Positions 23,177-48,824 of a stretch of 64,000 nt of DNA are shown piece by piece. How positions within the stretch are numbered: position 1 is the first letter of the stretch; each line of letters starts with the position of its first letter. The notes below the pieces were generated by a model. The model did no database searches, had not been told where the DNA came from, and saw nothing but the letters and a program-made list of their open reading frames with translations. The position numbers and the translations under genes are program-made. This DNA comes from Hormiphora californensis (Eukaryota > Animalia > Ctenophora): positions 9,052,001 through 9,116,000 of the forward strand of contig CM035350.1 of assembly GCA_020137815.1 (NCBI GenBank). Direction: 5' to 3'.

Positions 23177-24211
23177 CTAGCGGGGACCTACCCGTGTCAC
23201 TCTGGGCGTGAACAGGATACACACAATGGGATTCACAAGGGAACAGAAGCTAGGCACAAACAAGAAGTAGGCCAAGGCGCTTATTATTATGGAAGTGGGC
23301 AATTCAAAGGGTTTTTGATCCTTGACCGCCACATCTATCAGGTTCCCAATGTTTGATGTATTGATGGTGTAGACAACATAGGAACATGCTGTAAGGATAC
23401 TTCCGAAGTTGTGCACTAAGATCATGATTGTGCTTCTTCGTTTCCTGTTTTCTGAGCGAAGTAAAGCCGAATTAGCCACTTGTTTCATTGAGTTTCGGAT
23501 TAGTTCGAAGATTGTGAGAATTGAAGCGATGAGACCCATTACCTGTGCTAGTACATTGAAGATGTTGGATGCAATGAACACCTCTAGAGTTGAGTTAAAA
23601 GTTATACCCAAGGAATTAAAGGGCCCACCTTTAAAACTTGCAAAGACTCCCTGGGCAATGATGTAGTAGTAGGCCACATCCCCGTCCCCTTTAGTCCTCA
23701 ATAGGTCCACCTTGAACACCAGGCTGTAGATTGAAGTGATGATGATAAAAGCGAGGGGATATTTCGATGGTACATGAGAGAATGGGTATCGGATTTGGTA
23801 AAAGCGACACGCAGCAAGACATCCGGTAATGACACACGGCTGTGTAACAATTGTCCGTACAAAGTTACTGTAGAGACGTTGCCCGATGGATGACTGAGGC
23901 CACCGAAAGTACACATAGTGTGTTGTGCAGTTGACAAGGTATCCAAATTCGGGATCTTTCTCCGCCGCATAACATCTCCAATTCTTGGGAATGAAGGTGG
24001 CGTAGGCAAAGTAAGTGGGTAGGGTGGCACAAGTCAGGAAGTCTGTGATGAACAGGGATAGGTAGAGATTCCGAGCGAGGGAGGTTGATTTGCGAAGGTT
24101 TCTGGTTATCACCATCGCGTTCAGGGTGACACCGAGTGCCGAGAGAAGCACGAGGTAAATGACGATGTAAATGTCAGGGGTGGAGAAGCCTCCATCGGCA
24201 AACAGTGCCAT
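23177..24211 (-). CDS. Intronless rhodopsin-like (class A) GPCR, 344 aa, copy 1
   Basis: Seven hydrophobic segments, LN in TM1, SLFITDFL in TM2, CRFYQIRYPF at the DRY position, VNPIV in TM7. Confidence 0.85.
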   Translation of the reverse strand: MALFADGGFSTPDIYIVIYLVLLSALGVTLNAMVITRNLRKSTSLARNLYLSLFITDFLTCATLPTYFAYATFIPKNWRCYAAEKDPEFGYLVNCTTHYVYFRWPQSSIGQRLYSNFVRTIVTQPCVITGCLAACRFYQIRYPFSHVPSKYPLAFIIITSIYSLVFKVDLLRTKGDGDVAYYYIIAQGVFASFKGGPFNSLGITFNSTLEVFIASNIFNVLAQVMGLIASILTIFELIRNSMKQVANSALLRSENRKRRSTIMILVHNFGSILTACSYVVYTINTSNIGNLIDVAVKDQKPFELPTSIIISALAYFLFVPSFCSLVNPIVCILFTPRVTRVGPR

Positions 24212-24945
24212 TTAACTACTAATAATAGGAGAATTAATACAAACTCTTTTCAAAATTATAGCCCTATAAAAAGAGCTCAAGTTGCTCTTTTCAATGAGCC
24301 CAAGATTTTCGAAATTGCTTGAGAAATGGATGAGTTGGTTTATAATACATATTATGGAGACTTTATATAACTTTTAATGGTTGAATTATCGGAATTATGG
24401 CGAAAATCGTCTCAAATTGTGCTAAAATCTCAAAATGAGGGTTTTAATTGTTCCAGGCTCTGACTACACAACCGCTTTAGAATAAATGCATTATGTTTCA
24501 TAATGTTTCATAATGCTATGTTTCCCCGCCAACCTTTCATCCCTAACATGAAGGCGGACAGACATTTCGGATGATTTATAGATCACACAAACAGTAGGTA
24601 TAGAACAAATCCTTATGTTTTAGTTGCACTAAATTGCACGCCACATAGCGGAATCGCGCGCCACACATTTCCTGAAAACGTGTCAATGAGCAGGTTGTTG
24701 TTGTGTGCGCGGCTCTAGTTGCTACATGTTGCCCCTCGCAACCTGAAACGGGACAAGAGAGCTGACTTGCTACACATAGTCACTATATCCGTTTAGATGA
24801 GCAGGATATTCATTATTGTAGGGTGGTTCCCTTCTTTGGGAGACACAGCTACTAAGCTGTTGAACACAGGGGGAGGACTGAGTCCTGTATGGTCATGTTA
24901 TAATAACGATGTTTTGGCAAATTACGCCATAATCATCAATTCGAA

Positions 24946-25083
24946 CTTTCATCAACTACAACGTAAAACTATTTATTGAGCATTATTGATAATGGCCGTA
25001 CAGCCGAAACGTCTAATAAATGAGCGTCTTCGATGTCATATCGCACCCGCCAACAATATTGGTGTGAACAATGAAACCAAGAT
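24946..25083 (+). mobile_element. 138-bp retro-insertion: spliced-leader-like 5' end plus Penelope-type minimal hammerhead ribozyme, 11-bp TSD
   Basis: TSD ATCAATTCGAA at 24935-24945 and 25084-25094. The insert starts CTTTCATCAACTACAACGTAAAACTATTTATTGAG, then ATTA-TTGATAA-T-GGC cgtaca GCC-GAAACGTC-TAAT, then AATAAA. Confidence 0.7.
24982..25017 (+). ncRNA. Minimal type I hammerhead ribozyme candidate (U3-A8 core variant), predicted cleavage after C25013
   Basis: Core UUGAUAA and GAAA, stem II GGC/GCC, palindromic stem III ACGU, GUC triplet, stem I AUUA/UAAU. Confidence 0.55.
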
Positions 25084-25525
25084 ATCAATTCGAATTGCCA
25101 TGAATTTCGCCAGACCCCGATTTGATTCTCAGTGCACTCAGATGGGGTCCGTGGCGCCATGGATAGAGTGGAGGTAGTTTATTGTTTCAATTAAACCGTA
25201 CATTTGCCTCAGAGTACGTGTACCTGGGAAATGATTTGGCTATGGGTTTCTCTCTCTCTCTCTCTCTATCTCTATCTTTTTTTCTTTCTCTCTATCTTTT
25301 TCTCTCTCTCTCTCTCTCTCTCACTAGCTATCTCACTCTCTCTCTATTTAATTGTATTCACTACGTCCTAGTCCTTTTTGAGCTCTAGGTGTGTCTGCTT
25401 CAGCTTCAACTTGGAGCTACCTTTCTTGTTGTTGCGAAACCATCTATCATCTAAACACCATTAATTTAATTCCCTACGCGTTTATTTCGATTCCAGGTGT
25501 CATTGTAGATACTTATATTTTGATA

Positions 25526-25602
25526 CAGTCGGACCCCGATTTACCGGGCCCCGATTTACCGGAACCCCGATTTACCGGGAGGATAAACTTCCCCCGATAT
25601 GG
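25526..25602 (+). mobile_element. First half of a CAGTCGGACCC-terminus MITE, interrupted by a long-TIR element (second half at 34938-34971)
   Basis: TA|CAGTCGGACCCCGATTTACCGGG repeats; a matching terminus TA|CAGTCGGACCC is at 34936. Confidence 0.65.
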
Positions 25603-26084
25603 TAGTAGAGTCGATAACTACATCGACCTCTCCCAATTGTTCCAGTTTTTGTCACATCTGTTTGGAGCCTCGACACGACCTCTTAACAGGTGTTACTTTT
25701 TCACAAACTGTTTTCATCTTGGTGTAATCAGCAGTTGAAATGTTGTTGATCATAACAAAAACCGAACTATTTTTTTCAACTTGGGGTAAAACTATGGGTG
25801 TCAAAAGTTAGCTCTAGGTCCCCTGAGTAACCATCCGGAGACTCTAAGAGATATTTCAAGCCGTTCTCCCGTAATCATTAATCCCGGTGGAGAAAAAAAT
25901 ACAATGCGGACGTACGTGAGCGCTGGCAGGCTGTTTACATGTTATTGTATGTCTCTCACTCTCTCTGGAAAAACCGCACGTGCGGTTGCGCCGCGCGAGA
26001 TAACTCTTTCTCAAGGGGGAGAAAAGAGAGAGACAGACATTAACGTTATACATTAAAGTTGAGGTTGTAGGCAATTGCACGTAC
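25603..26084 (+). mobile_element. Left arm of a long-TIR DNA transposon (TAGTAGAG terminus, inferred 3-bp TSD TGG), Academ-like; duplicated in inverse at 26192-26674
   Basis: The same terminus and 313 bp of sequence recur at 34972-35284 with 2 SNPs; the flanks read TGG|TAG and CCA|TAG. Confidence 0.7.
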
Positions 26085-27195
26085 GTCCAATGGACATATT
26101 TGAGTATGGACGGTCCATACTCAAATATGTGCTCTACCGGGATTAATGATTACAGGAGAACGGCTTGAAATATCTCTTAGAGTCTCCGGATGTACGTGCA
26201 ATTGCCTACAACCTCAACTTTAATGTATAACGTTAATGTCTGTCTCTCTCTTTTCTCCCCCTTGAGAAAGAGTTATCTCGCGCGGCGCAACCGCACGTGC
26301 GGTTTTTCCAGAGAGAGTGAGAGACATACAATAACATGTAAACAGCCTGCCAGCGCTCACGTACGTCCGCATTGTATTTTTTTTCTCCACCGGGATTAAT
26401 GATTACGGGAGAACGGCTTGAAATATCTCTTAGAGTCTCCGGATGGTTACTCAGGGGACCTAGAGCTAACTTTTGACACCCATAGTTTTACCCCAAGTTG
26501 AAAAAAATAGTTCGGTTTTTGTTATGATCAACAACATTTCAACTGCTGATTACACCAAGATGAAAACAGTTTGTGAAAAAGTAACACCTGTTAAGAGGTC
26601 GTGTCGAGGCTCCAAACAGATGTGACAAAAACTGGAACAATTGGGAGAGGTCGATGTAGTTATCGACTCTACTACCATATCGGGGGAAGTTTATCCTCCC
26701 GGTAAATCGGGGTTCCGGTAAATCGGGGCCCGGTAAATCGGGGTCCGACTGTATCAAAATATAAGTATCTACAATGACACCTGGAATCGAAATAAACGCG
26801 TAGGGAATTAAATTAATGGTGTTTAGATGATAGATGGTTTCGCAACAACAAGAAAGGTAGCTCCAAGTTGAAGCTGAAGCAGACACACCTAGAGCTCAAA
26901 AAGGACTAGGACGTAGTGAATACAATTAAATAGAGAGAGAGTGAGATAGCTAGTGAGAGAGAGAGAGAGAGAGAGAGAAAAAGATAGAGAGAAAGAAAAA
27001 AAGATAGAGATAGAGAGAGAGAGAGAGAGAAACCCATAGCCAAATCATTTCCCAGGTACACGTACTCTGAGGCAAATGTACGGTTTAATTGAAACAATAA
27101 ACTACCTCCACTCTATCCATGGCGCCACGGACCCCATCTGAGTGCACTGAGAATCAAATCGGGGTCTGGCGAAATTCATGGCAATTCGAATTGAT

Positions 27196-27333
27196 ATCTT
27201 GGTTTCATTGTTCACACCAATATTGTTGGCGGGTGCGATATGACATCGAAGACGCTCATTTATTAGACGTTTCGGCTGTACGGCCATTATCAATAATGCT
27301 CAATAAATAGTTTTACGTTGTAGTTGATGAAAG
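27196..27333 (-). mobile_element. Mirror copy of the SL-headed hammerhead element
   Basis: Reverse complement of 24946-25083 within the right arm of the palindrome. Confidence 0.7.
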
Positions 27334-28067
27334 TTCGAATTGATGATTATGGCGTAATTTGCCAAAACATCGTTATTATAACATGACCATACAGGACTCA
27401 GTCCTCCCCCTGTGTTCAACAGCTTAGTAGCTGTGTCTCCCAAAGAAGGGAACCACCCTACAATAATGAATATCCTGCTCATCTAAACGGATATAGTGAC
27501 TATGTGTAGCAAGTCAGCTCTCTTGTCCCGTTTCAGGTTGCGAGGGGCAACATGTAGCAACTAGAGCCGCGCACACAACAACAACCTGCTCATTGACACG
27601 TTTTCAGGAAATGTGTGGCGCGCGATTCCGCTATGTGGCGTGCAATTTAGTGCAACTAAAACATAAGGATTTGTTCTATACCTACTGTTTGTGTGATCTA
27701 TAAATCATCCGAAATGTCTGTCCGCCTTCATGTTAGGGATGAAAGGTTGGCGGGGAAACATAGCATTATGAAACATTATGAAACATAATGCATTTATTCT
27801 AAAGCGGTTGTGTAGTCAGAGCCTGGAACAATTAAAACCCTCATTTTGAGATTTTAGCACAATTTGAGACGATTTTCGCCATAATTCCGATAATTCAACC
27901 ATTAAAAGTTATATAAAGTCTCCATAATATGTATTATAAACCAACTCATCCATTTCTCAAGCAATTTCGAAAATCTTGGGCTCATTGAAAAGAGCAACTT
28001 GAGCTCTTTTTATAGGGCTATAATTTTGAAAAGAGTTTGTATTAATTCTCCTATTATTAGTAGTTAA

Positions 28068-29102
28068 ATGGCACTGTTTGCCGATGGAGGCTTCTCCACC
28101 CCTGACATTTACATCGTCATTTACCTCGTGCTTCTCTCGGCACTCGGTGTCACCCTGAACGCGATGGTGATAACCAGAAACCTTCGCAAATCAACCTCCC
28201 TCGCTCGGAATCTCTACCTATCCCTGTTCATCACAGACTTCCTGACTTGTGCCACCCTACCCACTTACTTTGCCTACGCCACCTTCATTCCCAAGAATTG
28301 GAGATGTTATGCGGCGGAGAAAGATCCCGAATTTGGATACCTTGTCAACTGCACAACACACTATGTGTACTTTCGGTGGCCTCAGTCATCCATCGGGCAA
28401 CGTCTCTACAGTAACTTTGTACGGACAATTGTTACACAGCCGTGTGTCATTACCGGATGTCTTGCTGCGTGTCGCTTTTACCAAATCCGATACCCATTCT
28501 CTCATGTACCATCGAAATATCCCCTCGCTTTTATCATCATCACTTCAATCTACAGCCTGGTGTTCAAGGTGGACCTATTGAGGACTAAAGGGGACGGGGA
28601 TGTGGCCTACTACTACATCATTGCCCAGGGAGTCTTTGCAAGTTTTAAAGGTGGGCCCTTTAATTCCTTGGGTATAACTTTTAACTCAACTCTAGAGGTG
28701 TTCATTGCATCCAACATCTTCAATGTACTAGCACAGGTAATGGGTCTCATCGCTTCAATTCTCACAATCTTCGAACTAATCCGAAACTCAATGAAACAAG
28801 TGGCTAATTCGGCTTTACTTCGCTCAGAAAACAGGAAACGAAGAAGCACAATCATGATCTTAGTGCACAACTTCGGAAGTATCCTTACAGCATGTTCCTA
28901 TGTTGTCTACACCATCAATACATCAAACAATGGGAACCTGATAGATGTGGCGGTCAAGGATCAAAAACCCTTTGAATTGCCCACTTCCATAATAATAAGC
29001 GCCTTGGCCTACTTCTTGTTTGTGCCTAGCTTCTGTTCCCTTGTGAATCCCATTGTGTGTATCCTGTTCACGCCCAGAGTGACACGGGTAGGTCCCCGCT
29101 AG
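28068..29102 (+). CDS. Intronless rhodopsin-like GPCR, 344 aa, copy 2 (one I>N difference)
   Basis: Reverse complement of 23177-24211; SNIG versus SNNG. Confidence 0.85.
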   Translation: MALFADGGFSTPDIYIVIYLVLLSALGVTLNAMVITRNLRKSTSLARNLYLSLFITDFLTCATLPTYFAYATFIPKNWRCYAAEKDPEFGYLVNCTTHYVYFRWPQSSIGQRLYSNFVRTIVTQPCVITGCLAACRFYQIRYPFSHVPSKYPLAFIIITSIYSLVFKVDLLRTKGDGDVAYYYIIAQGVFASFKGGPFNSLGITFNSTLEVFIASNIFNVLAQVMGLIASILTIFELIRNSMKQVANSALLRSENRKRRSTIMILVHNFGSILTACSYVVYTINTSNNGNLIDVAVKDQKPFELPTSIIISALAYFLFVPSFCSLVNPIVCILFTPRVTRVGPR

Positions 29103-41785: not shown

Positions 41786-42181
41786 CCGTGGATTTTGGAA
41801 TGGAACTTTTTTACCCTTTTCAACTTTTTGTCCGGACGGTCCGTGCAATTTTTTGCAGCGAAAGCTCATCTAGTTCCGGAGTAAGGAGGGTTCAAAAAGT
41901 GCCGAAATGGGCTTGAACTGAAATATCCACCCTGCTGGCAAGCCGGCCCCCTTTTTTGATTTTTCAGGAAACGTTTTTGGAATGGTCAATGGGCCACTTT
42001 TGCGCTTGCTAGCGCAGTGATAAAAATATGGATCTTACTTGTTGAGTAAGGGGGAAGGGTGTGAGTCTTACAGTCTTCCCCCTTAGGGGAAACTCTAACT
42101 GAATGGCATCCCATTAATGGGATCCCATCAACAGTAAAACTCTAACTGATAATGGACCACAGTGATGGTTCTTTCTCTGTA

Positions 42182-42213
42182 TCATCAACTACAACGTAAA
42201 ACTATTTATTGAG
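42182..42213 (+). other. Spliced-leader-like 32-mer at the LINE 5' end
   Basis: Identical to 24949-24980; AT-rich and ending in TTGAG, like ctenophore SL exons (from recall). Confidence 0.75.
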
Positions 42214-42287
42214 CAGGTAGATATGTCACAGTGATCGCCCAGGAGGGCAGGCAACTTTCTACCTACTGTGGTGATAACAGAAAAGCT

Positions 42288-43586
42288 ATGGCTTCCGATA
42301 TCTGCAAGTGCGGCGAGGAAACTGATCCAAAGGGAGTTCGTGTACAGTGTGCTAACTGTAAGAGTCACTTTCACAAGACCTGTGCCAATCCCTTTTTTGC
42401 CAACTATACTGGTAATACGCTCCCGAAGAATTTTAATGACTGGTGGTGTACTCAGTGTCTAGTATTGCGGGACATTGATGAGGGAAACCAGGTGTTAATC
42501 AATTCCTTGACAGCTAAACTAGCTCCTCATTTCGAGGCACGTTTTGATGACCTCTCTAAGGAAATGGACGGTAAGGTGAACCAATTGAATGATCAAATTG
42601 AGTCTAAGATTCTTGCGGTACTCCAGTCCTTCTTCCCCAATAGATCACCTTCTCCATCAAACCCGTCATCTGCTTCTCCCTCCCTAGAGATCCTCCAGGA
42701 CTCTATGGCAACTCCTATCAAAACCTCCACTTCCCAATTCGTTACCACCCCCAAATCTTCAACCACCTATGCATCCTTGATTGATAAACCAGCTGCCCCC
42801 ACAGCTGATCCGCTCCCCATCATCCCACCACCGCGTCCCGCTCTTAAATCGGCCCCATCTCTGAAACTGAAGGTGCAATGTCCCAACAAAGATGCTTCCG
42901 AAATAGCTAAGACCCTTGACAGGGTATTGGTGTCGACCCCTCTGAACTTCCTTGACTGCAAAGGTGAGGATCAAATCGTTATTGGATTTCCGAGCTCAAC
43001 GGACTTGAAGTCTGTAAGTGATATTATTGACGAAAAGACTCCTGATGAGGTTACTGTTGCTCCAGTTACCCTAACTGCAAAAGTGACCGTTCTTAGCGTG
43101 CCTCTGGAAATTGAGGGAGTAGGGAAAGAGGCTCTCAACAAATTGGTCCTGCACAATCTTCTATCCAAAAACCCATGGCTCAGCTCTGATAACACTACTG
43201 TCGTTGACGTTAAGAGCCACTTCAAAAACAAGCAGCTGTGCAATGTTGGTCTTAGGCTTCCAGTAGAGATGCAGAAACGTTTGCTGCAGGAAGGCAAGTT
43301 GTATTACGGCAGATCGAGGCTGAATGTTCAGGAGCGCTTCTATGTCCAGCAATGTTACAAGTGCCAGGGGTACAATCATGTTAGCAAGGACTGTACAAGT
43401 GATGTCTCGGTATGTAAGAGATGTGGCGGTGACCACGATGTGAAGAAATGTGACGCTCCCCATACAAAACTCTGTGTTAATTGTAACCATTCTGCTGAAC
43501 ATAAAGCTAATGCGATAACCCATTTCAGTGGTGATCACAAATGCCCAGTGCGCCTCAGCATAATTAATGGGATGGCAAAAAACTAG
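42288..43586 (+). CDS. LINE ORF1: PHD finger, coiled coil and CCHC zinc knuckles
   Basis: CKC...VQCANCKSHFHKTC...WWCTQC; CYKCQGYNHVSKDC, CKRCGGDHDVKKC, CVNC...H...C. Confidence 0.9.
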   Translation: MASDICKCGEETDPKGVRVQCANCKSHFHKTCANPFFANYTGNTLPKNFNDWWCTQCLVLRDIDEGNQVLINSLTAKLAPHFEARFDDLSKEMDGKVNQLNDQIESKILAVLQSFFPNRSPSPSNPSSASPSLEILQDSMATPIKTSTSQFVTTPKSSTTYASLIDKPAAPTADPLPIIPPPRPALKSAPSLKLKVQCPNKDASEIAKTLDRVLVSTPLNFLDCKGEDQIVIGFPSSTDLKSVSDIIDEKTPDEVTVAPVTLTAKVTVLSVPLEIEGVGKEALNKLVLHNLLSKNPWLSSDNTTVVDVKSHFKNKQLCNVGLRLPVEMQKRLLQEGKLYYGRSRLNVQERFYVQQCYKCQGYNHVSKDCTSDVSVCKRCGGDHDVKKCDAPHTKLCVNCNHSAEHKANAITHFSGDHKCPVRLSIINGMAKN

Positions 43587-43588
43587 AG

Positions 43589-46500
43589 ATGTTAGAGGCT
43601 CCTTATCTCAGATTTGCAACCTTGAACTGCTTTTCTATCCGGAATAAACTTGAGGAGGTCATGATGTTAGTCTCTGAGAACTGTGTCGATGTTATGTGCA
43701 TTACTGAGAGCTGGCTCCATGAAGAAGAACACTCCATTAGCAGACAAATTTCTGAGTTTGATTATCAACTAATCAACCTCTCGAGAGGATCCAGAGGTGG
43801 GGGTGTAGCGGTTATCTCTAGGAATGGTTTGACGGTGAAGCGGTGCAAAACTAACAGACAATTTTCATCTTTTGAGTGTTTAGAGGTGACGGTGGAGGGG
43901 CGAGGAGTAGAGCTCACTAGAGCGGCTGTTGTTTATCGCCCACCAGATGCGTCTAAACAGACTGCTTTCTTGGACGAATTTGGAGATTTCTTGTCTGACT
44001 TCACGACCAAGTCAGGCCATCTAGTATTAACAGGTGATTTCAACATTCACATTGAGAACCCCAGCTGCTCTTTTTCCGATAACTTCATGCAGATAGTTGG
44101 AGACCATAACTGGCAACAGAAGATCGACCAGCCAACACACATAAATGGAGGTTGGCTTGATTTGGTTCTCACAAATGATGATTACCTCTTGAGTGATGTC
44201 GATGTTTTACCTACCCCAGAAGTCCCTGATCATTTTCTGGTGTCATTCAACGTTCACTGTGGCTCATCAAACCGTCTTCCTCAGAAAAAGACTGTTGTAT
44301 CTAGATGCATGCGAAGAGTGACGGTGGAAGCTATAACTGAAATGATCCAGAAATCTGAGCTGAAGGGCCCCAATTTTCCTGGGCGATCTCTTACTGAGTG
44401 CGTTGAGATGTATGATGAACTCTTATTAGACATTCTAGACGAGCTTGCACCTCTTGAAGAGAAAACACTTTTGATCGGTGACAAACCTCGGTGGTTTGAT
44501 GTTGACTGCTATACAGCACTGAAGAGCAGGCGTGGGGCTGAGCGCAGGTATCGACGGCTTTACAAGAAGAAGCTAAAGAAGCCCAATCGAGTTACTTATG
44601 AAGAACTTGATCTAGCGGAAAGGGAGTTTGTAAGAGAAGTGAGATACGCAAGGTCAGTGTTTAGACGGGCTAGACGAGAGTTTTTCAGACGCAGACTTCA
44701 GGCTGCTGAGGGCAATCCATCTGCTACCTATCAGGTGATGAACTACCTGCTGGGTAAAGATAAAACCCCGAAAGCACTCCCAACAGTGCCTGATCCTGCT
44801 AAACTTCCGGATTTACTGAGTGAGTTCTTTCACTCCAAAGTTGAAAAGATTTATCAAGATATTCGAAATGATCCATCCTTCTCAGAAACCTTGCCTAACT
44901 TGCCCGATACGAGAACACCAACATCAGTGCCTGTCCTTGCATCGTTTAAACCGGTATCGGATGAACAACTTGTATCTACCATCCGAAGAATGAACCAAAA
45001 ACATTGTTCCCTTGACCCTATACCGACCTCTCTACTCACAGGTGCCTTACCTCATCTCCTACCAATAATCTCGAAGATCGTCAACTCCAGTCTGTCCCAA
45101 GGAGAAATGCCTGATAACTTGAAAACAGCTGTAATAAGACCTGCTCACAAAAATGCGTCATTGGATCCGGATCAATTGAAAAGCTACAGACCTATTTCCA
45201 ACTTATCATTTTTATCAAAGGTAGTAGAGAAATGTGTAGCTGAGCAGCTAATTGACCATCTTGAAAAACATGATCTTTTCGCTAAATTCCAGTCCGCCTA
45301 TAGAACGAAACATTCTTGCGAAACGGCGACCGTGAAAATTGTCAATGACATCCTCTTACAGATTGACAGCAAATCTCAGGTGATTCTTGTGTTATTGGAC
45401 CTCTCGGCCGCGTTCGACACCATCTCGCATTCAGAACTGTTACGGCGACTTGAGAATGAATATCGAATTGGAGGTAGTGTTCTGAAATGGATCAAATCCT
45501 ACCTGTCAGGACGCTTTGCGAAGGTTAAGATCGGATCGACGGAGTCCAGTTCGAAACCTATTGAAATCGGAGTGCCCCAAGGGTCTATTCTTGGCCTGTT
45601 GTTGTTTATCCTACCGTGTGCGGCAAAAAAAATCCCCCCCCCCCTAGACCACCATAGTTGCCGATATGGTGGAGAGCTGTAACTTGGCAGGGTTGCTCCA
45701 CTATGTCTATCTTGATCCTGACAGAAAAATCAGAGCTCTAGCTCAAAATTCATTTTCATGAACGGAATGAACCTCTCCGTTCCTTCGATATGAGACCCCC
45801 TCATCATTCAGAATTTTTTGCCCGTCTTTGGCTATCGATTAGCTTTCCAATGTGACCAAGATCATCTAAATTGGACAACCACAAGAGACACAGTGTCATG
45901 TTTCTTAAAGTTAGTCAGGTCATGTGATCCTCACCGAATCGTTGAGTATTCAGTATTACGAATCAGTCTAAGTGGTAGAGAATCACGTATCACGGCTACT
46001 AATGAGGGATGACGATGCTGATTGGTCATGAGATCTGTAGCTCTGTGATAAATGTCCTCTTTCCTCGAATCACATTACCCTGTATTGGTACACATACCTC
46101 ATTAGCGGCCGTGATACGAGATTCCTCTGCCCCTTGGCTCGATTAGCAATCCCGGATAATCAACGATTCGGTGAGGATCACATGGCCTGACTAACTTTAA
46201 GAAACATGACACTGTGTCTCTTGTGGTTGTCCAATTTAGATGATCTTGGTCACATTGGAAAGCTAATCGATAGCCAAAGACGGGCAAAAAATTCTGAATG
46301 ATGAGGGGGTCTCATATCGAAGGAACGGAGAAGTTCATTCCGTTCATGAAAATGAATTTTGAGCTAGAGCTCTGATTTTTCTGTCAGGATCAAGATAGAC
46401 ATAGTGGAGCAACCCTGCCAAGTTACAGCTCTCCACCACATCGGCAACTATGATGGTCTAGGGGGGGATTTTTTTGCCGCACACGGTATATATGAAGGAC

Positions 46501-47406
46501 CTGGAAAAGATTGCTGCATTATACGACCTAACCATACATATGTATGCTGATGATAGTCAGATATATGTTTCATTCTCACCAGAATCAATCGGTGAGGTGA
46601 CCGAAAGACTACAGAAATGCATGGCACACATAAAATTGTGGATGGCTCATAGTATGCTGAAGCTCAACCCAGAGAAAACGGAAGTTCTCATCCTGAAAAA
46701 CAAATGGAGTAAATCACCTGATATTGAGAACATATTGATCAATCCAGAAGATGGCGAAACAGAAGTCGCCCCAAGAGCGAGAAACTTGGGCGTAATGTTT
46801 GACAGCACATTATCAATGGCCGATCACGTTACTAAAGTTGTCAAAGCTTGCAATCTACAACTGGTACAGATGTGGAGAATAGCCGGAAAATTGAGTAAGG
46901 CACAGAAAACTAAGCTGGTTTCAACCCTTATTCATAGCCGTATCGATTATTGCAACTCTCTTTTGGTTTCATTAAAGGATTCTGACCTGAAACGTCTACA
47001 GAAAGTTCAGAACAGTGCGACACGATATATTTATGGGAAAAGAGGAAAACGCGGTGTAACAAAACTTCGTATGAAATCACACTTCTTGCCTGTGAAACAG
47101 CGAATAGAGTACAAAGTTTGCTTGATGGTATACAAGACTCTTCATGATCAATCCCCTCCATACATGTCTGAGATGTTAGTGAAGCGGCCCCAGAAAGTGA
47201 AATCACTCCGAGTGGATAATGACGTCACCGCTCTGAAAGAGGTGCGGAGGAGTGAGTACCACTACGAGAACACTAGAGGCGCTTTCAGTATTGCTGCACC
47301 TAAATTATGGAATCAGCTACCACGATCAATCCGGGACTCAGAATCCCTTACTACTTTTAAAACATCCCTGAAGACGCACTTGTTCTTTAGAGCATACAAC
47401 CAATGA
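43589..47406 (+). pseudogene. LINE ORF2 (APE endonuclease plus reverse transcriptase, ~980 aa reconstructed), interrupted by a MITE
   Basis: CITESWL, VYRPP, GDFNIH, LDLV, PDH; YRPISNL, LDLSAAFDT, GVPQGSILG, YADD, DYCNSLL. Removing 45614-46488 restores FIL-YMKDL in frame. Confidence 0.92.
45614..46486. mobile_element. Tc2/pogo-like MITE with ~330-bp TIRs and TA TSD, inserted in the RT domain
   Basis: TA|CCGTGTGCGGCAAAAAAATCCCC ... GGGGATTTTTTTGCCGCACACGG|TA. Confidence 0.88.
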
Positions 47407-47519
47407 TCGGCAAAATAATCCTCACTTCCCTACATTTGGTACATCCACATGGATTCCTGAGTAACTACTGTCTCCAACTCCTATTCCTGATTCCTGGGCT
47501 CCCTTTTTCTCGTGTATTC

Positions 47520-48280
47520 CTTCACATCGATACCTGGGTCCTCTACTCCTACCTCCTCCACATCGATCCCTGGGTCCTTTACTCCTACCTCCTCCACATC
47601 GATCCCTGGGTCCTCTACTCCTACCTCCTCCACATCGATCCCTGGGTCCTTTACTCCTACCCTCTCCACATCGATTCCTGGGTCCTTTCCCTACCTTGCT
47701 CCACATCGATCCCTGGGTCTTTTCCCAACCTCCTTCACATCGATCCCTGGGTCCTTTACTCCTACCTCCTCCACATCGATTCCTGGGTCCTTTCCCTACC
47801 TTGCTCCACATCGATCCCTGGGTCCTCTACTTCTACCTCCTCCACATCGATCCCTGGGTCCTTTACTCCTACCTCCTCCACATCGATCCCTGGGTCCTTT
47901 ACTCCTACCTCCTCCACATCGATTCCTGGGTCCTTTCCCTACCTTGCTCCACATCGATCCCTGGGTCTTTTCCCAACCTCCTTCACATCGATCCCTGGGT
48001 CCTTTACTCCTACCTCCTCCACATCGATTCCTGGGTCCTTTCCCTACCTTGCTCCACATCGATCCCTGGGTCCTCTACTCCTACCTGCTCCACATCGATC
48101 CCTTGGTCCTTTACTCCTACCTCCTCCACATCGATCCCTGGGTCCTTTACTCCTACCTCCTCCACATCGATCCCTGGGTCCTTTACTCCTACCTTGCTCC
48201 TCATCGATCCCTGGGTCATTTACTCCTACCTCCTCCACATTGATCCCTGGGTCCTTTTCCTTGCGCTGCTCCATATCGAG
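47520..48280 (+). repeat. 34-36-bp minisatellite (~21 units) in the LINE 3' UTR
   Basis: Unit CACATCGATCCCTGGGTCCTTTACTCCTACCTCCTC, with recurring shorter variants. Confidence 0.92.
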
Positions 48281-48824
48281 CACATCCTCATTCCTCATTC
48301 TACAAACTATTTACAACATCCCTTCTACACGCTACTCATCACTTGTTATCACGACAGTTTATTGATTCTGTTTTTTGTACATACAATGTGATATTGAAGA
48401 GTGTTTGAATTAGACGAGATAACCCAGCTAGAGGTAGCTACGGGCGGAAACGTCCGCATGTTGGACATATTTATTTTAATACTTGTGAACCAATATGTTT
48501 AGTGTATTAGCGGGGTGTCAATAATTACATTTATTTAATTTATTGACATTATAAATATAATTTTAATCTTGTAATCTTGTAATCTTGTAATCTTGTATTC
48601 TCTCTGTAGGCAGTACATCTATGTACTGTCTACAGAGAGAATACAGAGAAAGAACTATAGGGCATGCCCGGGCACGGGCGTGCACACAGAGAGAATACAG
48701 AGAAAGAACCATCACTGTGGTCCATTATCAGTTAGAGTTTTACTGTTGATGGGATCCCATTAATGGGATGCCATTCAGTTAGAGTTTCCCCTTACTCAAC
48801 AAGATCTTAATTCTTACAGCTTAC

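Follow-up and report, generated by a model that had tools for sequence, protein, structure and literature searches.

A long interspersed nuclear element (LINE) occupying positions 42183-48595 of a 64,000-nucleotide (nt) stretch of the genome of the ctenophore Hormiphora californensis (contig CM035350.1; the whole stretch is hereafter called the window) begins with a copy of a host spliced leader (SL) exon. We consider it likely, with a probability of roughly 85%, that the template of its transposition was a messenger RNA (mRNA) to which the host had added this leader by SL trans-splicing. A preliminary description of the window had proposed an SL-capped RNA as the transposition intermediate, and this proposal is largely supported by the identity of the leader, its position inside the insert and the renewal of leaders in sister families. 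LINEs face a recurrent problem at their 5' end: as an upstream promoter is not copied, each new insertion risks silence. Some LINEs are known to meet it with internal promoters, others with self-cleaving ribozymes or by inserting into transcribed host repeats. Here, host trans-splicing appears to supply both the 5' end and the cap, the acceptor being regenerated by the copied leader.

Structure of the window LINE and its sister copies

Short target-site duplications enclose the inserted segment, and the leader is within it. On the left, the host element ends ...TTCTTTCTCTGTAT at 42182; on the right, TAT and then host sequence TCTCTCTGTAGG come after the tail (TAATCTTG)x4. The empty site GTTCTTTCTCTGTAT|TCTCTCTGTAG (vertical bars mark junctions) is found uninterrupted in the other arm of the host palindrome, as the right arm (about 48627-48760), in reverse complement, reads through it. 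The duplication flanking the insert measures 3-5 bp (TAT or TGTAT), T42182 being assignable either to the host or to the leader. Because the host element is cleanly interrupted and its other arm is not, the leader must be part of the LINE insert, and the boundaries given in the preliminary description, with a host element broken at 42182 and continuing after the tail, are confirmed.

The first bases of the insert are TCATCAACTACAACGTAAAACTATTTATTGAG, a 32-mer corresponding to the 3' 32 nt of a leader of ~43 nt that we call SL-A; most genome copies are preceded by (G)TTTCAAACTT. Five copies of the LINE family, 99-100% identical and all in unrelated flanks, hold the 5' region. In L063, 41 nt of SL-A are joined to CAGGTAG; the window copy retains 32 nt; L062 starts with 9 nt of leader, TTTATTGAG, directly after the (AAAT)n tail of a short leader-headed retrocopy; and L064 and L065 are truncated at element positions 10 and 106, respectively. 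L107, from an environmental DNA contig, is an additional copy; its sequence past the junction is 90.8% identical, and it has a different flank, the same junction and a full leader, whose 41 nt are identical to the exon of the SL gene described below. Beyond the bases present in the window, L063 and L107 add only the remaining leader bases and then enter unrelated flanks, so the 32-mer is not internal to a longer family-specific 5' untranslated region (UTR). A longer UTR of that kind, named in the preliminary description as a finding that would refute it, is thus not seen. The L062 arrangement (G000:C2:~6602584-6602820), a ~190-nt leader-headed retrocopy ending in (AAAT)n and followed by TTTATTGAG and the window LINE family, reflects either insertion of the LINE into the tail of a short element or a chimeric complementary DNA (cDNA).

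The window element is a retrotransposon without long terminal repeats (non-LTR retrotransposon) of the apurinic-type endonuclease (APE) class: it has a reverse transcriptase (RT), an APE-type endonuclease, a 3' tail, a target-site duplication and no LTRs, and its copies show variable 5' truncation. In the first open reading frame (ORF1), whose ATG is confirmed at 42288, 74 nt after the leader as had been described, the PHD-like finger matches PF00628 just below the Pfam cut-off (E=1.5e-4) and the CCHC knuckle matches PF00098 above it (E=2.1e-4). In tblastn searches, 18 other leader-headed loci, spread over 12 clusters, have first ORFs similar to this ORF1. ORF2 carries an endonuclease (PF03372, E=3.7e-13; PF14529, E=2e-7) and an RT, and its best solved relative is human LINE-1 ORF2p (E=2e-7). 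The RT match (PF00078, E=4.5e-19 for profile positions 6-132, and E=6.8e-7) is split by a nested miniature inverted-repeat transposable element (MITE), exactly between positions 132 and 133 of the RVT_1 profile. As the MITE interrupts the RT domain, the window copy cannot encode an intact ORF2 protein. Moreover, the rest of ORF2 reads as two ORFs (46474-47406 and 47403-48365) owing to a frame change near 47403. The preliminary description was thus right in calling the LINE full-length, provided that this is not taken to mean intact.

The same 32-mer is found as three exact copies in the window, at 42182-42213 (plus strand), 24949-24980 (plus) and 27299-27330 (minus), when none would be expected by chance. 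The first two had already been noticed, whereas the third had gone unmentioned. It mirrors the 24949 copy, in an inverted repeat with arms of 1346 nt that are 99% complementary (24000-25345 / 26934-28279), and the window therefore holds two independent occurrences, not three. The 24949 copy heads a short retrocopy flanked on both sides by the 11-bp duplication ATCAATTCGAA (24935-24945 / 25084-25094), in line with the earlier statement that this insertion has a target-site duplication, and members of its family (cluster 4) are also present at loci L007 and L024. As the retrocopy is present in both arms, it is older than the inverted duplication. The palindrome 24000-28279 also contains inner inverted repeats of 651 and 196 nt. 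Features of the window are listed in the table.

Table. Coordinates of the leader-headed insertions and of their surroundings in the window
Feature	Position	Strand	Remarks
Short leader-headed retrocopy, 138 bp	24946-25083	+	35-37 nt of SL-A followed by ~103 nt of non-coding sequence
Mirror of the 24949 leader copy	27299-27330	-	inside the inverted duplication; identical flanks in L013 and L014
Host palindromic (foldback/MITE-like) element, left arm	42040-42182	.	ends ...CTCTGTAT; left target-site duplication copy, TAT, at 42180-42182
SL-A exon copy, 3' 32 nt	42182-42213	+	5'-truncated by ~10 nt relative to the 41-44 nt of most copies
LINE 5' UTR, 74 nt	42214-42287	+	begins CAGGTAG; same junction in L063, L062 and L107
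ORF1, 432 aa	42288-43586	+	N-terminal PHD-like zinc finger and CCHC zinc knuckle
ORF2, part 1	43589-45613	+	apurinic-type endonuclease and first part of the RT (Pfam)
Foldback MITE, 873 bp, nested in the LINE	45614-46486	.	long, nearly perfect inverted arms; TA / TA flanks
Rest of ORF2	46489-48365	+	RT profile positions 133-193, then C-terminal region; two ORFs
LINE 3' UTR	48366-48563	+	precedes the tail
Simple-repeat 3' tail, (TAATCTTG)x4	48564-48595	+	TAT 48596-48598 is the right copy of the target-site duplication, then the host element again

The spliced leader and its genomic copies

SL-A is a real spliced leader, the second variant related to the one already published for this species. 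In genome-wide counts (made in the window's genome, 110.7 Mb in 45 contigs), its 28-nt core has 179 copies, as against 0 for the control. Since (G)TTTCAAACTTTCAT precedes most of these cores, the full exon measures ~43 nt, of which roughly 10 nt are missing from the start of the window copy. There are ten sites at which the leader is followed by GT: nine run into repeat ORFs, and the tenth, L040 on contig 13, is built like an SL RNA gene, with the exact exon followed by the donor (exon|GTAAGC), a hairpin, a single-stranded Sm-like site GUCUUUUGGUG and a terminal hairpin. A scan of public metagenome contigs with SL-A returned 13 contigs. The L040-type gene is conserved in three environmental contigs (L101, L102 and L106), with invariant exon, donor and Sm-like site and with insertions or deletions in hairpin loops only.

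In addition, eight transcript-like metagenome contigs begin, at their very 5' end, with the 28-mer core, after which an ATG and a long ORF come within 1-63 nt. Six of these eight ORFs correspond to NAC, PH domain, tektin, doublecortin (DCX), TPR and RIB43A, the other two being without a Pfam match. Judging from their sequences, such contigs look like the mRNA 5' ends that would be expected of a ciliated animal. Recognition of the 32-mer as a spliced leader in the preliminary description, which had pointed to SL RNA genes and mRNA 5' ends as the places where it should recur, is thus borne out by L040 and by the eight contigs with ordinary-gene ORFs. Finally, RNA-library contigs (from three metatranscriptome/metagenome runs plus a small one labelled with the same species) were aligned to the window and reach a depth of 4498 on the leader, versus less than 10 elsewhere. 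Those matching the leader continue into many different sequences, and the missing TTTCAAACTT is seen as a loose 5' end. For this species, a second leader variant is now defined together with its gene.

The published leader, GAGTTTCAAACTTTTCAACACTACTTTAAACAAATTAATTTGAG (here SL-B), was reported on 56% of H. californensis Iso-Seq reads, and 718 genomic copies were counted (PMC8527503). These copies were taken as leader loci or mapping artefacts, and retrotransposons were unmentioned (PMC8527503). The leader of that study has the same sequence as SL-B, while SL-A is a close variant that falls outside its '>90% identical' leader set (PMC8527503). We counted 640 copies of an SL-B 26-mer, of which 15 are followed by GTAAG (~15 likely genes), so that the gene-like share of leader copies is about 15/640 for SL-B and 1/179 for SL-A. 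Likely true SL-B genes (leader plus GTAAG) form a tandem array at G000:C13:3181663-3195355, with a spacing of roughly 0.7 kb. There are also divergent gene pairs (C5:~6431352/6431976, C9:~4528296/4528843 and C11:~221868/222492) and a single site (C12:4023269). Neither SL-B nor any other leader 5' end was found in the window.

To which sequences the other copies belong can be seen from a sample of 74 distinct leader-bearing loci (44 SL-A and 30 SL-B), which fall into 40 sequence clusters. L040 is the only leader gene among them, and all 30 SL-B copies head retroelement-like or other non-donor sequence. In 39 of the 74 loci, an ORF of at least 300 aa begins no more than 250 nt away from the leader; two leader-headed clusters also include the beginning of an endonuclease ORF. 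Several clusters consist of ~1.2-kb elements made of a leader, a short UTR, one ~320-aa ORF that belongs to no Pfam family, and a tail of simple repeats, for instance (TAA)n or (TTTACA)n; they are flanked by target-site duplications, for example TGGGTACGGA at L026 and TGGCTAT at L095. Other clusters are short non-coding retrocopies similar to that at 24946-25083. The length of retained leader peaks at 41-44 nt and tails off to 26 nt, as would be expected of reverse transcripts mostly reaching the RNA 5' end.

Most genomic leader copies are therefore heads of retrocopies rather than leader genes, and dozens of retroelement families are leader-headed. Consequently, the 718 leader loci reported previously need rereading as being mostly retrocopy heads, with a bearing on operon calls and on leader-based gene models that share a "first exon". 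The leader is also a natural tag of complete 5' ends, by which full-length retrocopies can be recognised and recent retrotransposition counted or dated.

Some leader-headed loci have unusual structures. The minus-strand locus L092 (G000:C1:~5371593-5374618) has a 5'-truncated SL-B at the head of an ORF of ~500 aa or more that extends to the end of the locus and combines AlkB-like 2OG-Fe(II) oxygenase and GDSL esterase domains; this ORF is a candidate esterase-type LINE ORF1, unusual in its fusion. Short leader-headed elements are found head-to-head at L007/L008 (G000:C1:~3717109-3717185), L081/L082 (C1:~3434329-3434395), L078, L087 and L024. Their leader 5' ends abut or overlap, thus forming perfect palindromes, to which Rfam microRNA matches are spurious. 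These pairs may be snap-back products formed at the RNA 5' end during cDNA synthesis. Stuttered partial leader repeats are located directly upstream of leader-headed LINEs at L030/L032 (G000:C2:~9041050-9041130) and L038 (C9:~8063220-8063305), with units such as (AACTACAACGT)n and repeated CATCATCAACTAC, and look like the result of slippage or of repeated template jumps at the 5' end.

Leader renewal and alternative explanations

Both the leader variant and the junction turn over between near-identical copies, the leader having been re-acquired between closely spaced transpositions. L026 (SL-A) and L085 (SL-B) are 99.1% identical over 1170 nt and share the same junction. Similarly, L003 (SL-A) and L079 (SL-B) are 98.7% identical, again with the same junction. 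In another family, the environmental locus L104 has SL-A and both sampled genome copies (L089 and L093) have SL-B. The preliminary description had raised the prospect of different leader variants on copies of one LINE family, and this situation is encountered in at least four sampled families. Junctions also vary: the bodies of L004 and L016 are 100% identical, while SL|CAAATG is the junction of the former and SL|TTTCAGCAAATG that of the latter. The shifts comprise GAG|CAGGAAG vs GAG|GAAG (L079 vs L068), GAG|TTTCAGCAAATG vs GAG|CAAATG, an identical TTTCAG shift in a second family, ...CATAG|ATATG and ...CCTAG|GTTTATGG. In these sister families, all five alternative downstream junctions lie directly after AG (CAG, TTTCAG twice, CATAG and CCTAG), while a random break would follow AG about once in 16. 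In these families, the template RNAs of leader-headed insertions carried a spliced leader acquired at an AG. The window family has no unspliced version in which its acceptor could be seen.

It had been suggested that the terminal AG of the copied leader, together with the CAG that follows it, regenerates an acceptor. This idea fits the pair L079 and L068 (GAG|CAG|GAAG), as well as a family (cluster 3) in which 25 of the 26 5'-complete copies are leader-headed. What the 26 copies share is the start of the UTR, 39 nt in length and unaltered in 25 of them; TTGAG precedes 25 of the 26, four copies carrying SL-A and the rest other leaders. It follows that the sources of recent copies were themselves leader-headed and offered the terminal AG of the resident leader. 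In the exception (C4:8589059), at most one of the five upstream bases matches TTGAG (beyond the 3-mismatch limit), so that AG cannot precede its junction.

Stacked relict leaders had also been anticipated, and one was found: at G000:C4:8221338-8221410, an SL-B-like 3' end (CTTCAAATGAATTAATTTGAG) is followed by a 10-nt spacer (AGCTTTTTAG) and a full SL-A. Transcription of a resident copy from an upstream start, followed by splicing at an AG in its flank, would produce such a structure. The full 93-nt pattern of SL-B, spacer and SL-A had no match within 3 mismatches, and it was a shorter pattern that revealed three differences from SL-B in the upstream leader, which may be a third variant or an aged SL-B.

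Some of the families also have a structural element in common. A 5' UTR hairpin, GCCC-AGGA-GGGC followed by AG (42237-42250 in the window), is shared with other leader-headed families. The hairpin GCCC-N4-5-GGGC plus AG is located 12-24 nt after the junction in 24 of the 74 loci and 8 of the 40 clusters, compared with a background of 0.7%. Its loops vary and its stem is invariant among families that are otherwise dissimilar (for example L003, L004, L006, L012, L020, L056 and L076). In clusters 3 and 7, the ~1.2-kb elements have a similar GCCCACAAAAA(A)GGGGC close to their 3' end.

Several observations weigh against a trans-spliced template for the window LINE. Leader renewal is established in sister families, not in the window family, whose informative copies (window, L063, L062 and L107) all have SL-A at one junction. 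RNA-library contigs with ~95% similarity cover the LINE body, and none of them bridges the leader into the window-family UTR. Loci were picked by exact leader match, so that conservation of the 26-28 nt bait is partly ascertainment and only the 13-18 nt located 5' of the bait are unbiased in this respect. As for the SL-A gene, its consensus fold shows no covariation, the sequences being too similar, and a 26-mer of its intron is unmatched, at up to 3 mismatches, in the rest of the genome, SL-B genes included. Finally, the stacked leader is a single case (in searches with exact patterns and spacers of up to 30 nt), and its upstream copy differs from SL-B at 3 of 21 positions.

The uniformity of the window family would be readily explained if its LINE ancestor had captured the leader once and passed it on as inherited DNA, with no continuing trans-splicing in this family, since passive inheritance predicts that the window copy, L063, L062 and L107 share SL-A and the junction. 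However, SL-A is a minority leader and four SL-A copies out of four are weak evidence either way, while sister families with the same UTR hairpin and ORF1 type contain copies 98.7-99.1% identical that differ in leader or junction. In addition, L107 and the window copy differ by 9.2% after the junction, whereas the 41 leader nt of L107 match the SL gene exon without any difference. A single capture thus seems quite unlikely. It is unlikely, too, that leader-headed copies are dead by-products of a master copy endowed with its own promoter and a longer 5' region (outron), trans-splicing then being incidental. The SL|TTTCAG... variants do imply that the acceptor TTTCAG once lay inside a longer transcript, and one cluster 3 copy (C4:8589059) has no TTGAG before it, but this copy has no usable acceptor at its junction. 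Moreover, we found no leader-less 5'-complete copy of the window family, and no promoter-bearing master with a longer 5' region for two families, in searches that give lower bounds. Finally, several diverged subfamilies are each leader-headed, which implies that new copies repeatedly became sources.

Two further explanations do without trans-splicing of the LINE RNA. The RT may have switched templates from the LINE RNA 5' end onto SL RNA or a leader-bearing mRNA, as in the chimeras known between U6 and L1. The stuttered partial leaders upstream of L030/L032 and L038 and the head-to-head leader palindromes (L007, L081, L078 and L087) do testify to odd events at RNA 5' ends during copying. Yet the junction is always at the exact 3' end of the exon, with no SL RNA intron bases, and a switch onto another mRNA would bring along bases of that mRNA. 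Element-side junctions are also fixed, and follow AG in five of the five alternatives, instead of being scattered like truncation points, which leaves template switching very improbable. Alternatively, the leader could be target DNA of a LINE inserting specifically into spliced-leader genes, in the manner of the trypanosomatid SLACS/CRE/CZAR or the nematode NeSL-1, a scenario whose only attraction is the adjacency of leader and LINE. The structure of the window insertion refutes it, and we give it next to no credence: the leader lies between target-site duplications inside a host transposon, this transposon and not an SL intron follows the tail, and flanks differ at every copy. Elements specific to SL genes use a restriction-like enzyme, whereas the endonuclease is here of the apurinic type.

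A proposed life cycle and its known counterparts

Under the trans-spliced template model, reverse transcription at the target would have run to, or nearly to, the RNA 5' end, so that the leader was copied as the first bases of the insertion; the 32 nt retained out of ~43 nt in the window copy would reflect a slight 5' truncation. Autonomous LINEs, the ~1.2-kb single-ORF elements and the short non-coding retrocopies would all use the same route. In the next round, transcription of a resident leader-headed copy would start either at its leader or further upstream. The 3' splice site would then be provided by the U-rich end of that leader and its terminal AG (or a nearby CAG or TTTCAG). A fresh leader, whichever variant is drawn, would replace everything upstream, which amounts to renewal and not to inheritance. 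Trans-splicing would thereby create a defined, capped 5' end a few dozen nt before ORF1, and the leader-bearing RNA would be translated and copied back at a target.

Such elements would have no promoter of their own and would depend on read-through or host transcription. The stacked leader suggests host read-through as the source of transcription, a signal within the leader or UTR being the other candidate. Whether ctenophores host an entire guild of promoter-less retroelements (autonomous LINEs, 1.2-kb single-ORF elements and short non-coding retroposons) that live on SL trans-splicing, with the copied leader as a ready-made acceptor, is a more tentative proposition, to which we would give slightly less than even odds. 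If true, this acceptor would turn any host read-through transcript into a capped, translatable mRNA and erase its own trace in the next round. It would also constitute a fourth solution to the 5'-end problem of LINEs, beside internal promoters, ribozymes and site-specific co-transcription. A bolder variant of this proposition may be entertained, in which the leader exon DNA would double as a portable internal promoter element; the leader exon DNA of the SL RNA gene of the nematode Ascaris is reportedly such an internal promoter element.

This life cycle has counterparts in other systems, with differences. In Hydra, ~30% of the Iso-Seq reads of transposable elements carry a leader, and RNAs of these elements likewise use the host trans-splicing machinery (PMC12220107). 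In the portion of it available to us, the Hydra report is situated at the RNA level and does not describe leaders heading genomic LINE copies, turnover of variants or a role in the life cycle (PMC12220107). Dinoflagellate retrogenes carry relict spliced leaders (PMC5585692, PMC12014239). In both dinoflagellates and Hormiphora, trans-spliced mRNA is reverse transcribed, and the resulting DNA copies begin with the leader and can be re-spliced. However, dinoflagellate cases are retrocopies of host genes, in which re-splicing at an internal AG leaves stacked truncated relicts, whereas the main carriers in Hormiphora are autonomous LINE families and their dependants, and re-splicing at the terminal AG leaves no trace. 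SLACS, CRE, CZAR and NeSL-1 are also non-LTR retrotransposons adjoining spliced-leader sequence, but their leader is target DNA in SL genes, while that of Hormiphora belongs to the inserted cDNA and is found at dispersed sites. In the literature, we found no report of LINE families with leader-headed genomic copies or of leader turnover between copies, the nearest precedents being the leader-bearing Hydra transcripts and the dinoflagellate retrogenes.

A functional parallel is provided by ribozymes similar to that of hepatitis delta virus (HDV), which cut the 5' ends of R2, RTE and L1Tc out of co-transcripts (PMC3185411, PMC4035085). Trans-splicing would do here what these ribozymes do for R2 and RTE elements. 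In both cases, a portable upstream promoter would be lacking, a defined 5' end would be cut from a longer host transcript, and the processing signal would stand at the very start of the element and thus travel along with it. The difference is that in Hormiphora the spliceosome would cut and add a capped host exon, which is itself copied into DNA. A ribozyme acting at the start of the Hormiphora elements is disfavoured, as it would also remove the leader, and Rfam returned no match to HDV-like or hammerhead ribozymes at E<=1 on L063, which has a full 5' end of the window family, and on seven other loci.

Six short non-coding leader-headed loci (L081, L069, L090, L094, L070 and L078) have a peculiar start: the first ~35 nt after the leader consist of CUGAUGA (or CUGAAGA), a small hairpin and GAAAC, which resembles a hammerhead core or a box C motif. 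The hammerhead reading found no support: no Rfam match was obtained at E<=1 and manual completion of the fold failed. These CUGAUGA-type elements may derive from box C/D small nucleolar RNAs.

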